A DNA stretch of 64,000 nt from Bugula neritina (lineage: Eukaryota; Animalia; Bryozoa), in the NCBI GenBank assembly GCA_964035545.1, contig OZ037771.1:13577133-13641132 (forward strand), in the 5' to 3' direction. Below the pieces are notes generated by a model. The model saw nothing but the letters and a program-made list of their open reading frames with translations, made no database searches and was not told where the DNA came from. Shown one piece after another: positions 6,250 through 12,221 of the stretch (position 1 is the first letter of the stretch; each line of letters begins with the position of its first letter). Both the position numbers and the translations under genes were made by a program.

Positions 6250-9200
6250 ATGGAGGAGTACATTGCTGAACTAGAGTCACTTTTAGCAAAACATTTGGAA
6301 GAAGCAGAAACAACAGGAAACTGGGTTGACTATGTCAAGGTAAAATATTTATTTATAATTATATGAATAATATTGAATAATATTGAAACTTAAACATATT
6401 ATAATTATATTAAAATATAATATTATATTACATGCATGAGCTGCAGTAGATAAATATTTAATGATTATGATTATTTTTGCATGGAAATGAACAAGTGAAT
6501 AATTATATTATGGTTATAGTGAGGGGCTGAATCAAAGCTGCAGCAAATGCTTATGAATGACATTTTTATTTTCATTATAACACATTGAAATATCTCCACT
6601 ATAGAACATCTTTATATAGCTTGTTTTAGAAATATACAAGTTTCAAACTTAAATATTGAATCATTGCTTGCAGACAGGCTATTTTGAAATTAAAACACCT
6701 TCAAATGCACTTTTCAAGGACCATGGGTTTTTGAGCGCGAAGTTTAATTAAATTAAATTAAATTAAATAGCTGGGTGTATTATAAAAACACAGCATTATA
6801 GATTTATTTTAGAGTCTTCTCTTACTTATTTAGACATATAAAGTATACATTAATAAAATTATGGATTATTCGACATGTTAGGAAAAAATATTCCTACTTG
6901 CCATCTCACAACTTATAATAAACTAAAACTAAAACTTTTCATTTCCAAATGTTATTATTATTATTAATTTTATTAAAAATTTGATTTTCTTATAATGTAA
7001 CTATATGTAGCACACACTATATAAACTATATAAACCACACTATAATAAAAGGCCTGGCCTCACGATCGTGAGAATCACATGAAATTGTGTAATGATTTTT
7101 GTGAGTTATCCTCTTGTTTTGACCAGCCACACACTCGTCGGACTAAACACATAATAAATAGTCCGTGAATGAGTCCTGCATGAGGTACAAACAGCAGAAA
7201 ATTGTTAAATAGAAAAACATGGTAGAAATAAAATAATTACTGTTGGTAAAACTCTATTGACCAATCAAATGGTACTTACGGCCGATTGCGATTTTGCATC
7301 CATCGTCATCGTTGTGTACACCTAACGAAAACAATTCTGTTTGAATTTCTTTAAATTTTCTCGTATGATTGTGTTCTCGTGTCAAATAGACTAATTTATG
7401 TGATTTTTATGAGTGTGTGGTCAAAACTTTACAGGCCGATTCTCTATAACTTGCAAACTATACTCAGACTATATAAGTTTGTCATTCGGAGATGCAATAA
7501 AAATAAAATTGGATTAGAGCCATTTAGCTGCAGTGGCGAAATAAATTTGCAAGAAAAGCAACCGAGTTTATTTAATTGGAAATTGACACAAGTAGTCTGG
7601 AACTGATGTTGAGTAGTGATAATCATTTCTAGCACCTACAGCAAGTTGAACCTCTACAGCTTAAAGATAAACAATGTTGAGCAAAATTAACCTGTCTATG
7701 ATATAATTATAAGTAGTTGACATATGACAAATAACATGTATATTCAGACACAATCAGAAAAATCATCGTAATGAGTATAACATTTACTAAGAATGAGCAC
7801 AGTTGTCAAATAATAAACATTAATTTTCAAACATGCATTATATATTATATATTATATATTATATTATATTATATTATATATTATATATATATATGTATTA
7901 TATATATATGTATTATATATTTATTATATTATATATTATATATTTTATATATATATATATAATATATAATTTTCAAAAATGCATCATATAATATTAAATA
8001 TTATATATTATATTATATTAAACTATATTATATATATAATATATATATATATAATATATAATATATATATATAAAATATATATAAAATATATATATATAT
8101 ATATATATATATATATATATATATATATATATATATATATATATATATATATATATATATATATATATATATATATATATATATATATATATATATATAT
8201 ATATATATATAATGTAGTGTGTTCAGATTGTTAATGATACACTTTACTTTGCTGGAACTCCAACTAGATTGACAATCAGCATACATTATATATATATATA
8301 TATATATATATATATATATATGTAGCAAATTGCAATATATATTAATAAACTAATATAAAGTTAATATTCAGTTATAGCTGTGAAAACGACAAGAATAATA
8401 AAATTCAGTCAACCAAGGGGTAGTTTGCCAGCTTTAATATTTTAGCATTAAAACACAATTGAATTAAATTTCAAGAAATAAAACTTTAATTGTGCAGCTA
8501 TAATAAGTTAACTTTTGTTTCAGGCGATTTGAATAATTTGCATTCCTTTAAATATTTGCTATCAACCTCACATCCTAAATGTTCAAACAGCTTCAGATTA
8601 AAAAAGTTAACAAAAATATTTATTATCTTATAAAGCAGTCTATATATACTTATAAATATTAGCAATTGTCTTTCCTTTGTGATGTAGAGTCATGGCATAG
8701 CAAACCACCTGCAAACCATAGATTCACAAAACAGTCAGAGATACCAAAAAGTCTATGAAATAGAAAACAAATGGTACAAAGGACAACATCCACTTACTTT
8801 CACAGAACACCAAGAATTGACAAGACAACATAAACAACAACTTAAAGAATACCGAGAGAATACTATAATTAACCTTGACAGTTTGAATAGTGATGTAGAG
8901 TTGTTGGACATAGACAATGTGTTCAGTGATGCTAATTTAGAAATATTAAATCGGTTGTCTAATGATGTATTTGCAAGTAGTGAGGAGTGTTCCAAAGAAT
9001 TTGCAGAATTTTCTCGTTCTATAAGTAGATCAAGTAGAGAGTTGCTTAAAGGGTGTCAAGCAGAGGCACCCTGTAACTTTGCTGTAGTTGCTTTGGGCTC
9101 TGTAGCTCGTGGTGAGGCAACTCCATATTCTGACCTTGAATACGCATTTCTCATTGAAAATGAAAATAAGAAAGGATATTTTACTCACTTAGCTGTTGAC

Positions 9201-12200
9201 ACATATTTTAGAATAACCAACCTCAATGAGTCTCCATTAAAAACCTTCAACATTAAAGTTGAAAACTCTCCTGACTGTCTCAGTGAGAGTTGTCCAGTAG
9301 GATATAGAATAGATGGTCTCACACCAAATGCTGGTAACATACCGACAGGAAATGGAATGGGTAGATCTTTCACCTTCACAGTTGAACAAGCAGTGAAGCT
9401 GTACAAAGAGAAAGTGATGTCGCCATCTGAAGAACTAGCGAGTCTTTCTGATCTGCTCATGACATCACAGTTGATATACTGTTCTGATAATGGGGCACAG
9501 TTGCATGACAGATTTATGGAAGAAATAGCTACATATGAAAAAGTTACAGCTCAAAATGATCAGAAAATCAAACAGAAAAGAGTGGAGGGACTTTCTCTAG
9601 ATTTACAGAAATATGATTTTCTCCCAGAATTTCGATTTCGAACTGTTGTTGGTGAAAATGTGAAAGTAAAGGAAGACATTTTTCGTTACATCACTCTGTT
9701 GGCTACTAATTTAAACATTGCTCTTTGTTTACAGCTAAACTTTCCATGGAAGGTGTACGATGCAATTTATCAGTCAGGTATAATTTCCAAAGAAAGTCTG
9801 AGATACCTTCACATGATCTTGGGATTCTCAATATACATGAGAACTATGGCATACATCACTATGGGAACTCAAAAAGCTGAAATCCTGTTAGGTACTCCCA
9901 CTGCTGAGATAAAATTAAGTAGAATTGCAAAAAGCAAACATTACTATTTGCCAAGGAAGATATTTGTGATATTTGGCTCAATACTGATTTCAATAAAGCA
10001 ATCCCTCATATCAAGTATGCACAAAGGAAACAGGCTATTGTCAACATTAAAGGAGAAGAGTGTGAGTGAATATTTAAAATCAGTGCTTCCCAGTGATTTG
10101 GTGACAGATAAACATGATTATATGACAATATGTGAAGTATTGTGTTATGTTGAAGACTCAAACACAGCCTTAAAGTACATATCTGCCGGTTCAGGTGTTG
10201 ATATCAGAAGTGTAGGGTATGAGAAATTTGTGAAACGTATAAGATCAAAATACAACACAAACAAGTCAGATGGTTTAGAGAAAAAGTATTTGGAAATGTG
10301 CTGTTTTTTGCTGATTATTAGTGACCATGCTAAATGTGCCATTGACTACCTGAGTTGGTTGATCAGTTACGAAACCAGTTGGTTTAATATACTGCAACAT
10401 AATAGACAGATAGCGGAATGTATGAACAGCCTGAGCAGATATAAATCTGCAAGAAATATTCTCATTCAGATAAAGTTTACACTAGAAGAAAAGCTCATGA
10501 TAGACAAGAACGAATCTCTTACTGAGTACATACTAAGAAAAGTAAAAAATTCTACTGGATTACCTGAGTATCTACTCAACCTGTTTCAAATCACATCTGA
10601 TCTCTTCTGCTTACTGGGTAAAACTAATATTCACTCATCAAATCCGGTGGAAGCTAAGTTTTATCTACAGCAATCTCTTTCTATTCATAGAATATTGTGT
10701 GAAAAGAAGTTCTTAAATAATACAAGACAATATTTGATAACAGAATCTGAAATTCTGAACTACTTAGGAGCTGCATGCTTCCATGCGGGCGGAAATAGCA
10801 CAGCACTTGAATATTACACCCAGTCAATAGAGATGATGAGAGCTGTTTATGGTGAACATACAAACCACCCTGATATGGCTATAAGCTATAGCAATATTGG
10901 TGCTGTACACACACAACTAGATAACTATGACACTGCACTAGAATATCACACCAAGTCACTGGAGATGATGAAAGCTGTTTATGGTGAATGTGCAAACCAC
11001 TCTAGTATAGCTGGCAACTATAATTATATTGGTGATGTACACAGGCAACTAGGTAACTATGATACAGCACTAGAATATTACACCAAATCAATAGAGATGA
11101 TGAAAGCTGTTTATGGTGAACATACAAACCACTCTAGTATAGCTGCCAGCTATAATAATATTGGTGTTGTACACACAGAACTAGGTAACTATGACACAGC
11201 ACTAGAATATCACGCCAAATCAATAGAGATGATGAAAGCTGTTTATGGTGAACATGCAAACCACTCTAATATAGCTGCCAGCTATACCAGTACTGGTAAT
11301 GTGCACAGAAAACTAGGTAACTATGACACAGCACTAGAATATCACGCCAAATCAATAGAGATGATGAAAGCTGTTTATGGTGAACATGCAAACCACTCTA
11401 ATACAGCTGTTAGCTATGGTTATATTGGTGATATACACACACAACTAGGTAACTATGAAACGGCACTAGAATATTGCACCAAATCAATAGCGATGATGAA
11501 AGCTGTTCATGGTGAATGTCCAGATCACTCTAGTATAGCTATCAGCTATGGTAATATTGGTACTGTACACACACAACTAGGTAACTATGACACAGCACTA
11601 GAATATCACACCAAGTCATTGGAGATGATGAAAGCTGTTTATGGTGAAGGCTCAGCCCATCCTGATCTTACAGCTGCAATCTTTTCTATTATAGACATCT
11701 ATTCAAAATTCAACAGATATGAACACTGTCTGTCCCTTTGCTACACTCCTGTGTTGAGAAATCAATGTCTGTCCAAAGTCCTCAATGGGATATCGGCAGA
11801 TTACATCATATCATCAAACTACAGAAGAGCTGCTCAGTTTCTGCAGATTGCTATTTCTAAAGCTGCTGCTCATAGCATAGAACAGGCTCACAACTACCAC
11901 CAGATGGGTAGATGTTACATGCTGATGTCATCATACAAGAAGAGTTGGTTTTGGTTGTACTTTGCTCTCTGTCTGTATCAGTTCATTCCCAAAACTAGAC
12001 AGGTCATTTTCTTTCTTGGTAAAGTACACCTGTCTATATCCCATCTACTTCTGCACACTGGTCATGTGACTCAGTCTCTTGAACATTGTGAAAAATCTCT
12101 TGACAATTTTAACAATCTCCCTGATGTCAATACAAACTCTGTTGTTCAAAATTTAAAAACCCACCTTCTACAGTTCTATGACTCATTGCATCTTATTAAA

Positions 12201-12221
12201 ATCTTAACCAATCACTTCTAA
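6250..12221 (+). CDS. Nucleotidyltransferase (GlnD/GlnE/DUF294-like)-TPR protein, ~1207 aa; exons 6250..6339 and 8688..12221
   Basis: The 1134-aa ORF extends in frame upstream to a phase-0 acceptor (TTTCCTTTGTGATGTAG|AGT, 8688). An upstream 90-nt phase-0 exon reads [30 protein letters not shown]|GTAAAA. Motif [26 protein letters not shown] is the Pol-beta NTase GS..DxE signature of the GlnD/GlnE clade. Seven TALEY-anchored 44-aa TPRs follow. No signal peptide or obvious TM. Exon 1 linkage is inferred from phase only. Confidence 0.9.
7051..7437. mobile_element. Putative MITE in the NTase-TPR intron
   Basis: GGCCTG...CAGGCC ends; internal inverted match of GTTTTGACCAGCCACACACTC (7116) and GAGTGTGTGGTCAAAAC (7411); CpG-richer than flanks. 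No TSD seen. Confidence 0.55.
7836..8330. repeat. (TA)n microsatellite / low-complexity tract
   Basis: Pure (TA)n ~8087-8211 and 8288-8321 with degenerate TA-rich flanks. Confidence 0.95.
10800..11669 (+). repeat. Coding tandem repeat, 132-bp (44-aa TPR) unit, ~6.5 copies
   Basis: AC(A/T/G)GCACT(A/T)GAATAT recurs at 10800, 10932 ... 11592 at exact 132-bp spacing. Confidence 0.95.

Follow-up and report, generated by a model that had tools for sequence, protein, structure and literature searches.

The gene at 6250..12221 of the window, the 64,000-nucleotide stretch of Bugula neritina DNA analysed here, is apparently an intact, two-exon bryozoan gene with an unbroken reading frame, and its product joins a nucleotidyltransferase (NTase) domain of the DrrA/GlnE type to a long TPR solenoid (Table 1). 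On balance, our analysis favors the reading that this protein belongs to a family of TPR-directed protein nucleotidyl (AMP) transferases. The architecture and expansion of the family indicate that it is probably used in biotic conflict.

Table 1. Features of the NTase-TPR gene, in window coordinates
Feature	Position	Strand	Description and basis
Exon 1	6250..6339	+	Start codon, 30 aa (MEEY...DYVK); GT donor at 6340; ORF
Intron	6340..8687	+	Phase-0, GT...AG, AT-rich; long TA microsatellite at ~7770-8330
Exon 2	8688..12221	+	1177 codons plus stop at 12219-12221; open frame
DrrA/GlnE-type nucleotidyltransferase (adenylyltransferase-like) domain	8688..10052	+	Exon-2 aa 1-455; structure, Foldseek, Pfam
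Catalytic motif G137-S138-X10-D149-X-E151 (G-X11-D-X-E)	9096..9140	+	Invariant in 29 relatives; aligns to DrrA GS...SDLD
GYRIDG with third carboxylate D209, then invariant AGNIPTG loop (G216-T220)	9300..9350	+	Conservation, model
Ten-residue segment with invariant K328 and R333, start of helical lobe	9660..9689	+	Conserved columns
Continuous TPR-type alpha-solenoid	10113..12218	+	Exon-2 aa 476-1176, ~17-18 helical hairpins; full-length model
Homogenised array core	10799..11648	+	6.4 units of 132 nt (44 aa), 86% matches; Tandem Repeats Finder

The open reading frame at 8817..12221 (+) continues in the 5' direction as far as the acceptor AG (8686-8687), which places the start of exon 2 at 8688. 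The protein thus combines 30 residues from exon 1 with 1177 from exon 2, and the earlier observation that nearly all of it lies on a single 3.5-kb exon holds. The translated frame of exon 2 contains no methionine ahead of the catalytic motif, and the start codon is provided by exon 1. Exon 1 and the splice junction 6339|8688 are supported by homology. Copies of the exon-1 peptide (73-100% identical) lie ~1-2.5 kb 5' of 17 paralogues, and the B. neritina model P0007 has the same peptide at its N-terminus. Watersipora RefSeq models contain a 29-aa first exon that precedes the same A/SHG(L/I)AN boundary, and A/SHG[LI]xN stands straight after the AG in all paralogues and in further relatives. The best named matches are B. 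neritina proteins of ~80% identity, and transcription of the gene is likewise suggested by homology. Retroposition, once considered as a reason for the intron-poor structure, is not indicated, given that the phase-0 intron is conserved at the same position across the bryozoan clade. No signal peptide or transmembrane domain was detected in the protein, and it is therefore probably cytosolic.

The structure model shows a complete Pol-beta nucleotidyltransferase of the DrrA/GlnE type (DUF294 clade) in the N-terminal 455 residues of exon 2. The AlphaFold2 model of full-length exon 2 has a pLDDT of 87.9 and a pTM of 0.79, and a model of residues 1-604 has a pLDDT of 88.3. The modeled domain consists of N-terminal helices, a Pol-beta core and a helical DUF294_C-like lobe, which is the GlnE-type NTase plus helical lobe that had been anticipated for this region. 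In VIA-align, DrrA (6yx5_B, residues 21-349) is superimposed on residues 1-453 of the model with a Z of 25.6 over 322 aligned residues, and GlnE AT-N (1v4a) and AT-C (3k7d) follow with Z values of 19.7 and 18.3 over ~310-320 residues. DrrA and the two GlnE domains are also the sole Foldseek matches below an E-value of 1e-3 (2e-6, 4e-5 and 9e-5). Sequence comparison agrees with the GlnD/GlnE/DUF294 branch to which the motif had been assigned: a profile match to DrrA reaches an E-value of 8e-6 with the catalytic motif aligned, and Pfam DUF294 (PF03445) scores 28.2 bits, above its threshold of 21. Pfam SidM_N remains below its threshold (14.5 versus 27 bits), and relatives also match DUF294_C and SidM_N. 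With the NCBIfam GlnD models, the protein reaches only 12-17 bits, where the thresholds are >500. Neither the domain search nor the full-length model revealed an HD, ACT or NACHT/NB-ARC domain or any P-loop NTPase in the protein, as had been claimed for NACHT/NB-ARC.

The catalytic carboxylates, reported earlier as an intact motif, are indeed complete and conserved. The motif GS-x-AR-x-E-x-TPY-SDLE (G137-E151) occupies precisely the position originally given, and GYRIDG is found at 9300..9317. The observation as a whole is far beyond chance, the catalytic columns being invariant across 29 relatives with identity down to 22%. Among 325 related domains from bryozoans, amphioxus, an annelid, a coral and bacteria, the motif glycine is kept in 313 of 314, the aspartate in 315 of 316 and the glutamate in 313 of 316. 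The second motif carboxylate is Glu rather than Asp, a variant that the published degenerate motif [G-X11-D/E-X-D/E] would permit; this motif is described together with protein AMPylation by GS-ATase and DrrA (PMC8097203, PMC12409994). D209, invariant in the 29 relatives and kept in 321/323 domains, is modeled at a short strand that follows the second strand of the core, in a region (9300..9350) with a local pLDDT of only 60-80 and in a loop with one of 50-80. A low-scoring alignment places Thr at the counterpart of DrrA Asp249, a mapping without confidence. R333 is kept in 318/323 domains, and its segment aligns to VKTHIMR of DrrA as a second, low-scoring stretch. Taken over the 325 domains, the G-X11-D-X-E motif, D209, K328 and R333 show either invariance or ~99% conservation. 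Between paralogues, the NTase core exhibits a pN/pS of 0.35-0.46.

What does the rest of the protein contain? The full-length model has no other globular domain beyond residue 476, and Pfam TPR_12 (215.9 bits) and TPR_10 both match. The high homogeneity first ascribed to the array is evident in its core (Table 1). The TPR part structurally resembles the cargo-binding arrays of kinesin light chain and LGN, and residues 476-604 match the KLC1/KLC2 TPRs with a Z of ~11. The number of 44-aa units varies among close paralogues. Within the unit, the highest entropy falls on 10 of the 44 positions, which line one face of each helix; the helix matching TPR helix A carries seven of the 10. The pN/pS is 1.25 at these 10 positions versus 0.43 elsewhere, the former value being biased upward by the choice of positions for their variability. 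Unequal crossing-over that homogenises the repeats could also contribute to this pattern.

The genome contains ~62 loci of this family in tandem clusters, so the gene is not a single-copy housekeeping gene. Stops occur within the match at four loci, and the neighboring copy L002 stops early within its own TPR array. As stated initially, other marine invertebrates have similar annotated proteins, and large families are present in amphioxus, the annelid Owenia, an octocoral and other bryozoans, in a distribution that is patchy among animals. One-to-one orthologues across phyla are absent, and the tree groups the sequences of every phylum into a separate starred clade. The architectures of relatives include NTase-TPR-Roc-COR-Death in Branchiostoma floridae C3ZSI0 and OTU-NTase-NTase-TPR in Owenia, and two or three tandem NTase domains occur in some proteins of amphioxus, Owenia and Jidaibacter. 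The same NTase+TPR_12 build is found in Jidaibacter, an uncultured Chlamydiae genome and a 697-kb gammaproteobacterial genome, with E-values down to 2e-63 for a bryozoan profile. Bacterial architectures include F-box...NTase...TPR and NTase-TPR-UIM (cf. PMC4209131). The protein also has a weak PADLOC match (23.9 bits) to the candidate defence family PDC-M70A.

In the mechanism that we propose, the concave face of the TPR array would bind a protein or peptide, and the enzyme domain would move a nucleoside monophosphate, most likely AMP from ATP, onto a hydroxyl side chain. This hydroxyl may belong to the bound protein itself or to a downstream target that is modified once binding relieves inhibition. 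Protein NMPylation is proposed because the closest solved relatives, DrrA and GlnE, work in this manner. DrrA modifies Tyr77 of Rab1, GlnE modifies Tyr397 of glutamine synthetase and GlnD modifies PII likewise. Domains of the GlnE type are also able to take AMP off a protein, as in the case of GlnE AT-N, so the bryozoan NTase may act in either direction. Expansion, changing repeat number and variable helix faces suggest a role in biotic conflict, such as immunity, symbiont control or allorecognition. The ligand-gated, NLR-like receptor envisaged by the initial annotation is plausible, given its fit to the tandem expansion, the repeat-number changes and the one-face variation.

Known systems resemble the bryozoan protein in different parts. 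In structure as well as sequence, its NTase is matched best by the N-terminal AMPylation (ATase) domain of Legionella pneumophila DrrA/SidM (PDB 6yx5, 3nku). Both have an aligned GS...SDL[D/E], a G-X11-D-X-acid motif and the same helical lobe, and both join the enzyme to a target-binding module, a putative role in the case of the bryozoan TPRs. However, the two share only 11-14% sequence identity, the bryozoan D-X-E replaces D-X-D, and DrrA carries GEF and PI4P-binding domains in place of TPRs and is a secreted bacterial effector rather than a member of an endogenous animal family of ~60. GlnE belongs to the same Pol-beta NTase clade and fold, and the tandem NTases of some relatives recall its two-domain layout. 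In contrast to GlnE and GlnD, the window gene encodes a single NTase domain and has no PII partner, HD or ACT domain. To our knowledge, the PII/GS-adenylylation circuit is absent from animals. NLR/STAND receptors with TPR, LRR or WD40 arrays also place an enzyme at the N-terminus and a repeat array at the C-terminus, and together with fungal NLR-like proteins with homogenised repeats they share tandem lineage-specific expansion, repeat-number variation, highly similar units and a focus of variation on few surface positions. Nonetheless, the bryozoan solenoid directly follows the enzyme, and the protein is not an NLR but resembles one only in layout because NACHT/NB-ARC and P-loop NTPase domains are absent. 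The Neochlamydia NEX2 family, which has 50 members, combines a DUF294 NTase with a TPR array (Domman et al. 2014, PMC4209131). NEX2, compared from the publication, and Candidatus Jidaibacter acanthamoebae share with the bryozoan protein a DUF294 NTase and TPR_12/TPR_10 in one polypeptide and expanded families, and an OTU domain occurs in some NEX2 members as in Owenia relatives. These bacterial proteins usually begin with an F-box and are presumed secreted effectors, and Jidaibacter P0146 places one NTase domain after a long TPR stretch, whereas the window gene lacks both F-box and OTU domains and contains an intron.

Could the NTase act on something other than a protein, or serve the cell's own upkeep? 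In the style of cGAS, OAS and CD-NTases, it might make a cyclic or linear oligonucleotide messenger for a separate effector upon ligand binding by the TPRs. Of this earlier suggestion, membership in the Pol-beta superfamily stands, and oyster proteins with Mab-21/cGAS-like domains followed by TPRs (PMC8195603) and the PDC-M70A match are compatible with it. However, the best CD-NTase fold match, CdnC (6p80), ranks 48th in Foldseek with an E-value of 0.18 and a TM of 0.17-0.27, compared with Z values of 18-26 over the whole domain for DrrA/GlnE. The bryozoan NTase has a helical lobe of DUF294_C/GlnE type, we found no receptor partner such as STING or SAVED, and the characterised close relatives all act on protein tyrosines (PMC8097203), making a messenger function improbable. 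On another reading, the family consists of regulatory or housekeeping AMPylases or deAMPylases that tune endogenous proteins, such as those of the cytoskeleton or of trafficking, recognized via the KLC-like TPRs, and the copies would be neutral tandem duplicates. It accords with the KLC- and LGN-like arrays, with the ordinary purifying selection on the NTase and with the metazoan AMPylase FICD, which has TPRs and an endogenous chaperone as its target (PMC12409994). We consider it rather unlikely, given the ~62 loci in lineage-specific clades, the lack of cross-phylum orthologues, the changes in unit number between near-identical paralogues, the concentration of variation on one helix face, and the relative fused to Death and Roc-COR.

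The origin of the gene is a separate matter. It is scarcely credible that the gene is bacterial contamination or a dead relic, despite its bacterial relatives, the four loci with stops and the truncated L002: the contig is chromosome-scale with 30% GC throughout, the neighbors are animal-type NHL-repeat genes, the GT-AG intron is common to paralogues and other species, and 1177 codons are open with all catalytic residues intact. A domesticated effector from intracellular symbionts or pathogens, with a host function now unrelated to sensing or with mere proliferation, is a less remote possibility, albeit still an unlikely one. It concerns origin and is compatible with TPR-directed NMPylation. 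In the best tree, which is unrooted, bacteria are placed between the bryozoan clade and the amphioxus/annelid/coral clade, but a single animal clade is not rejected (AU p = 0.40, delta lnL 3.26). Of the bacterial origin suggested initially, the part that stands is that the nearest non-animal relatives are intracellular bacteria of the same architecture; the tree gives no direction. These intracellular bacteria are known carriers of eukaryote-like domains, so host-to-bacterium transfer is also possible. The shared NTase+TPR_12 build, in some cases with F-box or UIM, the published NEX2 family, the patchy animal distribution and the single large coding exon favor domestication, whereas the conserved spliceosomal intron and the 30% GC point to long residence in an animal genome.

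TPR-directed NMPylation, the reading that we prefer, would set the family beside the AMPylases of animals. FICD/HYPE likewise unites TPRs with a catalytic domain (PMC12409994), and the bryozoan protein, if active, would also be an animal protein AMPylase. Nevertheless, FICD/HYPE and SelO adopt Fic and pseudokinase folds unrelated to the Pol-beta NTase, and FICD is single-copy in metazoans (PMC12409994), in contrast to the bryozoan family of ~60. Thus, if active, this family may represent a third class of animal protein AMPylases, one that has so far gone unstudied.

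The NTase-TPR gene of the window is an animal gene, apparently intact, in which a complete DrrA/GlnE-type nucleotidyltransferase (NTase) domain with a conserved active site is fused directly to a TPR solenoid. The window, at C7:13577133-13641132 of an assembly of 216 Mb in 321 contigs, is AT-rich (~30% GC) and eukaryotic in character. The frame of a 1134-codon ORF runs open upstream as far as a TAG whose AG is the splice acceptor, and thus exon 2 starts with SHGIAN at the positions tabulated below. A/SHG(L/I)AN is the common open-frame start in every paralogue, and exon 2 lacks a Met ahead of the catalytic motif. 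Exon 1 is followed directly by a GT donor and is supported by 17 paralogues that carry a 73-100% identical copy ~1-2.5 kb upstream, by the Bugula neritina protein model P0007, which opens with an identical peptide, and by the Watersipora subatra RefSeq models, in which a 29-aa first exon is joined to AHGLAN. Therefore, the gene consists of exon 1, a phase-0 intron and exon 2 (30 + 1177 aa). All searches and models were run on exon 2 or parts of it, and residue numbers refer to exon 2. The nearest named proteins are from Bugula neritina (~80% identity) and Watersipora subatra (~35%), which marks the host as a bryozoan near Bugula. The acceptor position is unchanged in genomic contigs of relatives. 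The initial annotation had considered the intron-poor structure compatible with bacterial origin or retroposition; retroposition was rejected on account of this conserved intron position, and bacterial contamination on account of the conserved intron together with the chromosomal context. The intron contains a long TA-rich microsatellite that produces YI/IY runs in several frames and spurious ORFs on both strands.

Coordinates of the NTase-TPR gene, neighbouring ORFs and paralogous loci (C2, C5, C6 and C7 are contigs of the Bugula assembly; other positions are those of the window)
Feature	Position	Strand	Extent or basis
Exon 1	6250-6339	+	30-codon ORF; ORF and homology
TA-rich microsatellite	~7770-8330		
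Exon 2	8688-12221	+	1177 aa
ORF	8817-12221	+	1134 codons; open frame
G-X11-D-X-E motif	9096..9140	+	G137 to E151
GYRIDG motif	9300-9317	+	
Homogenised TPR array	10799-11648	+	6.4 units of 132 nt (44 aa)
Putative NHL-family ORFs	17637-18320, 22357-23283	+	
Putative NHL-family ORFs	28269-29135, 40688-41524, 47069-48028, 52659-53537, 60425-61270	-	
Paralogue cluster	C5 15.9-16.16 Mb		11 loci
Paralogue cluster	C5 6.35-6.43 Mb		7 loci
Paralogue clusters	C5 11.8 and 15.1 Mb		3 loci each
Paralogue cluster	C6 0.39-1.0 and 2.9-3.15 Mb		16 loci
Paralogue loci	C2 32.47-32.55 Mb and elsewhere		11 loci
Paralogue cluster	C7, window gene and two copies 12 and 25 kb upstream		3 loci
L002, the copy 25 kb upstream	C7:13559032-13563714		frame 1372-4455

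What kind of enzyme is the N-terminal domain? The initial annotation placed it in the GlnD/GlnE/DUF294 branch of Pol-beta NTases and anticipated that a structure model searched with Foldseek would return such an NTase together with a helical domain. Both the sequence profiles and the fold support this placement. DUF294 (PF03445) matches the window protein at 28.2 bits against a Pfam threshold of 21 and scores 25-66 bits in paralogues and relatives; DUF294_C (PF10335, threshold 22.5) reaches 26-49 bits in amphioxus, IMG and Chlamydiae relatives and has no Pfam match in the window protein. The best solved relative by core profile is the AMPylation domain of the Legionella AMPylase DrrA (SidM; E 8e-6), with GS...TPYSDLE aligned opposite GS...TEYSDLD of DrrA. 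An AlphaFold2 model of residues 1-604 (pLDDT 88.3, pTM 0.89) has only four Foldseek matches in the PDB with E < 1e-3, namely DrrA (6yx5_B, E 2e-6), the N-terminal domain of the glutamine synthetase adenylyltransferase GlnE (1v4a, E 4e-5) and the GlnE C-terminal adenylylation domain (3k7d_B and 3k7d_A, E 9e-5 and 3e-4), with a Foldseek probability of 1.00. In VIA-align, the match to DrrA extends over the whole domain (Z 25.6, 322 residues, model 1-453 versus chain 21-349), and the GlnE N-terminal (AT-N; Z 19.7, 322 residues, model 36-445) and C-terminal (AT-C; Z 18.3, 308 residues, model 36-443) domains are matched similarly. The window protein thus contains the whole-domain fold of the GS-ATase/DrrA type, with N-terminal helices, NTase core and helical lobe, and within the broader assignment the fold is more exactly DrrA/GlnE-like. 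Membership in GlnD itself is ruled out: GlnD continues from its NTase into HD and ACT domains, whereas the window protein has no Pfam match to either, and NCBIfam GlnD models reach only motif-level scores of 12-17 bits versus thresholds of 519-1010.

The active site is strongly conserved. The GS-x-AR-x-E-x-TPY-SDLE motif of the initial annotation, which reads G137-X11-D149-X-E151, lies exactly where it was placed, and the later acidic GYRIDG motif is also present. In an alignment of 29 N-terminal regions from bryozoan paralogues, Watersipora, Bugula and further relatives, with identity down to 22%, the invariant residues are G137, S138, T145, P146, S148, D149, E151, D209, G216-N217-I218-P219-T220, D305, K328, R333, R385 and K437. 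The catalytic columns are ~99% conserved overall across 325 domains of animal and bacterial family members from all sources found: the motif G in 313/314, the first Asp in 315/316, the motif Glu in 313/316, the third Asp in 321/323 and the Arg of FRYP in 318/323. D209 is located at the next short strand after the motif in the AlphaFold2 model and, given this position and its invariance, is probably the counterpart of DrrA Asp150. In DrrA, Asp150 and Asp249 are additional metal-binding carboxylates that later strands supply; opposite Asp249, a low-scoring profile alignment has a Thr. D305 is a further invariant Asp.

The enzyme domain leads into a kinesin-light-chain (KLC)-type TPR array, evident from both profile matches (TPR_12 215.9 bits, TPR_10 168.8 bits; Pfam) and a helical-hairpin solenoid. 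In the model of full-length exon 2 (pLDDT 87.9, pTM 0.79), residues 476-1176 form helical hairpins only, as ~17-18 TPR-like pairs, and residues 476-604 match the KLC1/KLC2 TPRs in VIA-align (Z ~11, ~112 residues). The highly homogeneous array described from the sequence is borne out by Tandem Repeats Finder (86% matches), and these homogenised units constitute the middle of the solenoid. Pfam detects neither NACHT/NB-ARC, HD, ACT or Death nor any further globular domain in the window protein, and the same applies to six divergent paralogues. With helical hairpins alone from residue 476 to the end of the model, the window protein lacks a NACHT/NB-ARC domain, as initially proposed. NLR/STAND proteins, in contrast, place a NACHT/NB-ARC P-loop NTPase between effector and repeats, and NLR membership is ruled out by the missing NTPase domain.

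The family is large in this genome and varies chiefly in its repeats. The NTase part has 66 genomic matches, which resolve into ~62 loci and supply the paralogue count called for by the initial annotation; at four of these loci the match contains stops. The build is identical in all paralogues tested, and TPR length varies, since their open frames span 861 to >2000 aa. Close paralogues, whose enzyme parts are 80-95% identical, differ from one another by entire 44-aa units, and exon 2 versions of 1044, 1089, 1092 and 1177 aa share one C-terminal peptide. In a comparison of 49 in-register units of 11 paralogues, most of the 44 positions have an amino-acid entropy close to zero, and the peaks fall on 10 positions. 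Three of the variable positions are on the TALEY helix at i, i+4 and i+7; the other seven recur every three to four residues or so on the second helix, which, from the TPR_12 consensus, we take to be the groove-lining helix A. The pN/pS ratio is 1.25 at the 10 variable positions, a value biased upward because these positions were picked for variability, 0.43 at the other TPR positions and 0.35-0.46 in the NTase core. The NTase core of the same, more distant gene pairs has a synonymous diversity of ~0.3, as against 0.11 at the other TPR positions, and this lower value points to repeat homogenisation.

Two further observations concern the surroundings of the gene. The L002 copy, 95% identical to the window gene in the enzyme part, has a frame of 1028 aa that breaks off within its eighth TPR unit, so that L002 is a shortened variant or else a recent pseudogene. 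The remainder of the window (17637-61270) is filled by seven paralogous ORFs of 227-319 aa with 33-53% mutual identity, three of which score 22-23 bits with the NHL repeat of Pfam, slightly over its threshold of 20. These look like NHL beta-propeller exons of a second tandem family, perhaps TRIM-NHL-like, that adjoins the NTase-TPR triplet.

NTase-TPR proteins extend well beyond bryozoans. An exhaustive profile search through 1.84 billion cluster representatives returned 2204 clusters with E <= 1e-3 and 511 with E <= 1e-30. In line with the initial remark that such proteins are annotated in marine invertebrates, the named matches include Bugula and Watersipora proteins, more than 90 Branchiostoma members (named 'TTC28', 'KLC4' or 'Protein-PII uridylyltransferase N-terminal domain-containing protein'), ~17 from Owenia fusiformis, some with OTU, and one from Dendronephthya gigantea. 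The open-access literature searched yielded no paper describing the animal family, which bears automatic annotation names only and is uncharacterised in animals. Branchiostoma floridae C3ZSI0 (P0185) carries the NTase at aa 166-514, followed by TPRs, Roc, COR-A and a C-terminal Death domain, so that the enzyme here is part of a multidomain protein of the apoptosis/immunity type.

Intracellular bacteria carry the same NTase-TPR build. It is common to the window protein, Jidaibacter P0146, the IMG protein P0132 (F-box, DUF294, DUF294_C, SidM_N and TPR) and the locus L029. Candidatus Jidaibacter acanthamoebae has two members of 3000-3700 aa, and a search from the Jidaibacter domain found 4 proteins. 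A bacterial-genome scan with the NTase profile, which relied on one peptide pattern and therefore says little on true bacterial spread, gave five loci and added three sources: an uncultured Chlamydiae genome, an unclassified uncultured bacterium and a strongly reduced gammaproteobacterial genome of 697,420 bp. In this last genome, L029 (OZ257147.1, 3658-12964) encodes two adjacent family proteins, one with NTase, TPR_12 and a eukaryote-type ubiquitin-interaction motif (UIM), and the other with an AAA_16 (STAND-like) ATPase region after the NTase. The architecture is already known in amoeba endosymbionts from the 50-member Neochlamydia family NEX2, with its F-box-(OTU)-DUF294-TPR layout (Domman et al. 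2014, PMC4209131). By this published description, NEX2 resembles the window protein in DUF294 and the C-terminal TPR array and differs in its N-terminal F-box and, in some members, OTU, for neither of which the window protein or the tested bryozoan paralogues have a Pfam match; OTU recurs in the Owenia relatives.

Unrooted trees (FastTree, 312 domains; IQ-TREE LG+C20, 56 domains) separate Bryozoa (SH-aLRT 99), amphioxus (98), Owenia (100) and a group of amphioxus, Owenia and coral (94). Therefore, each phylum expanded its own set, forming large lineage-specific tandem families. In the best tree, bacterial lineages separate the bryozoan clade from the remaining animals. Two independent transfers, as this tree suggests, were dropped as an explanation because a tree that unites all animals was not rejected by an AU test (delta lnL 3.26, p 0.40).

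What might these enzymes do? DrrA, GlnE and GlnD move AMP or another NMP onto a protein hydroxyl (PMC8097203, PMC12409994). The NTase of the window protein is predicted to transfer AMP, or another NMP, onto a protein hydroxyl likewise, DrrA and GlnE being its closest relatives of solved structure. Synthesis of a nucleotide messenger is a possible alternative activity; however, the top CD-NTase structure, CdnC (6p80), ranks only 48th in Foldseek with E 0.18, a fold match too weak for CD-NTase membership, and the cGAS/OAS/CD-NTase (Mab-21/CD-NTase) profiles of Pfam and NCBIfam do not match the window protein. AMP removal is possible as well. Several amphioxus, annelid and bacterial members contain two or three NTase domains with TPRs between the copies (P0035 and P0204 of Branchiostoma, P0144 of Owenia, P0146 and P0154 of Jidaibacter, and P0132), and this arrangement is reminiscent of GlnE, in which an AMP-adding domain is paired with an AMP-removing one; copies within one protein are often each other's closest relatives.

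For the physiological role, a housekeeping function of the family is possible. PADLOC hits were motif-level only and were given no weight as evidence of defence. The initial idea of an NLR-like sensor fits the data as a candidate role. The TPR groove is predicted to pick or sense the partner, and the family probably serves immunity, symbiont control or allorecognition. A more far-reaching joint reading, which we consider rather unlikely in its entirety, is that marine invertebrates (bryozoans, amphioxus, annelids and corals) hold a third, hitherto unstudied animal class of protein AMPylase with the GlnE/DrrA fold. Each enzyme would be coupled directly to a TPR array that diversifies and would act as a receptor-enzyme lacking any nucleotide-binding oligomerisation domain. 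When the groove binds a protein of non-self, symbiont or allogeneic origin, either that protein or a host switch would become NMPylated, and the module would have been traded between these animals and intracellular bacteria, which deploy it as an effector on their eukaryotic hosts.

Two reviews of AMPylation discuss only Fic (FICD) and SelO as metazoan enzymes and treat the GlnE/DrrA fold as bacterial (PMC8097203, PMC12409994). Hundreds of animal genes (~60 in the Bugula genome) encode this fold in full, its active site intact and strongly conserved, and always in combination with a variable TPR array. The groups that hold the family are noted for the great size of their innate-immune gene repertoires. 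Through the architecture in common with amoeba-endosymbiont effectors, the exchange of genes by hosts and intracellular bacteria can be studied on a concrete example, and the AMPylation hypothesis is directly testable with standard AMPylation assays. If active, the NTase-TPR enzymes would be a new class of animal post-translational modifiers and would provide a simple receptor-enzyme layout in animal groups rich in innate-immune genes.
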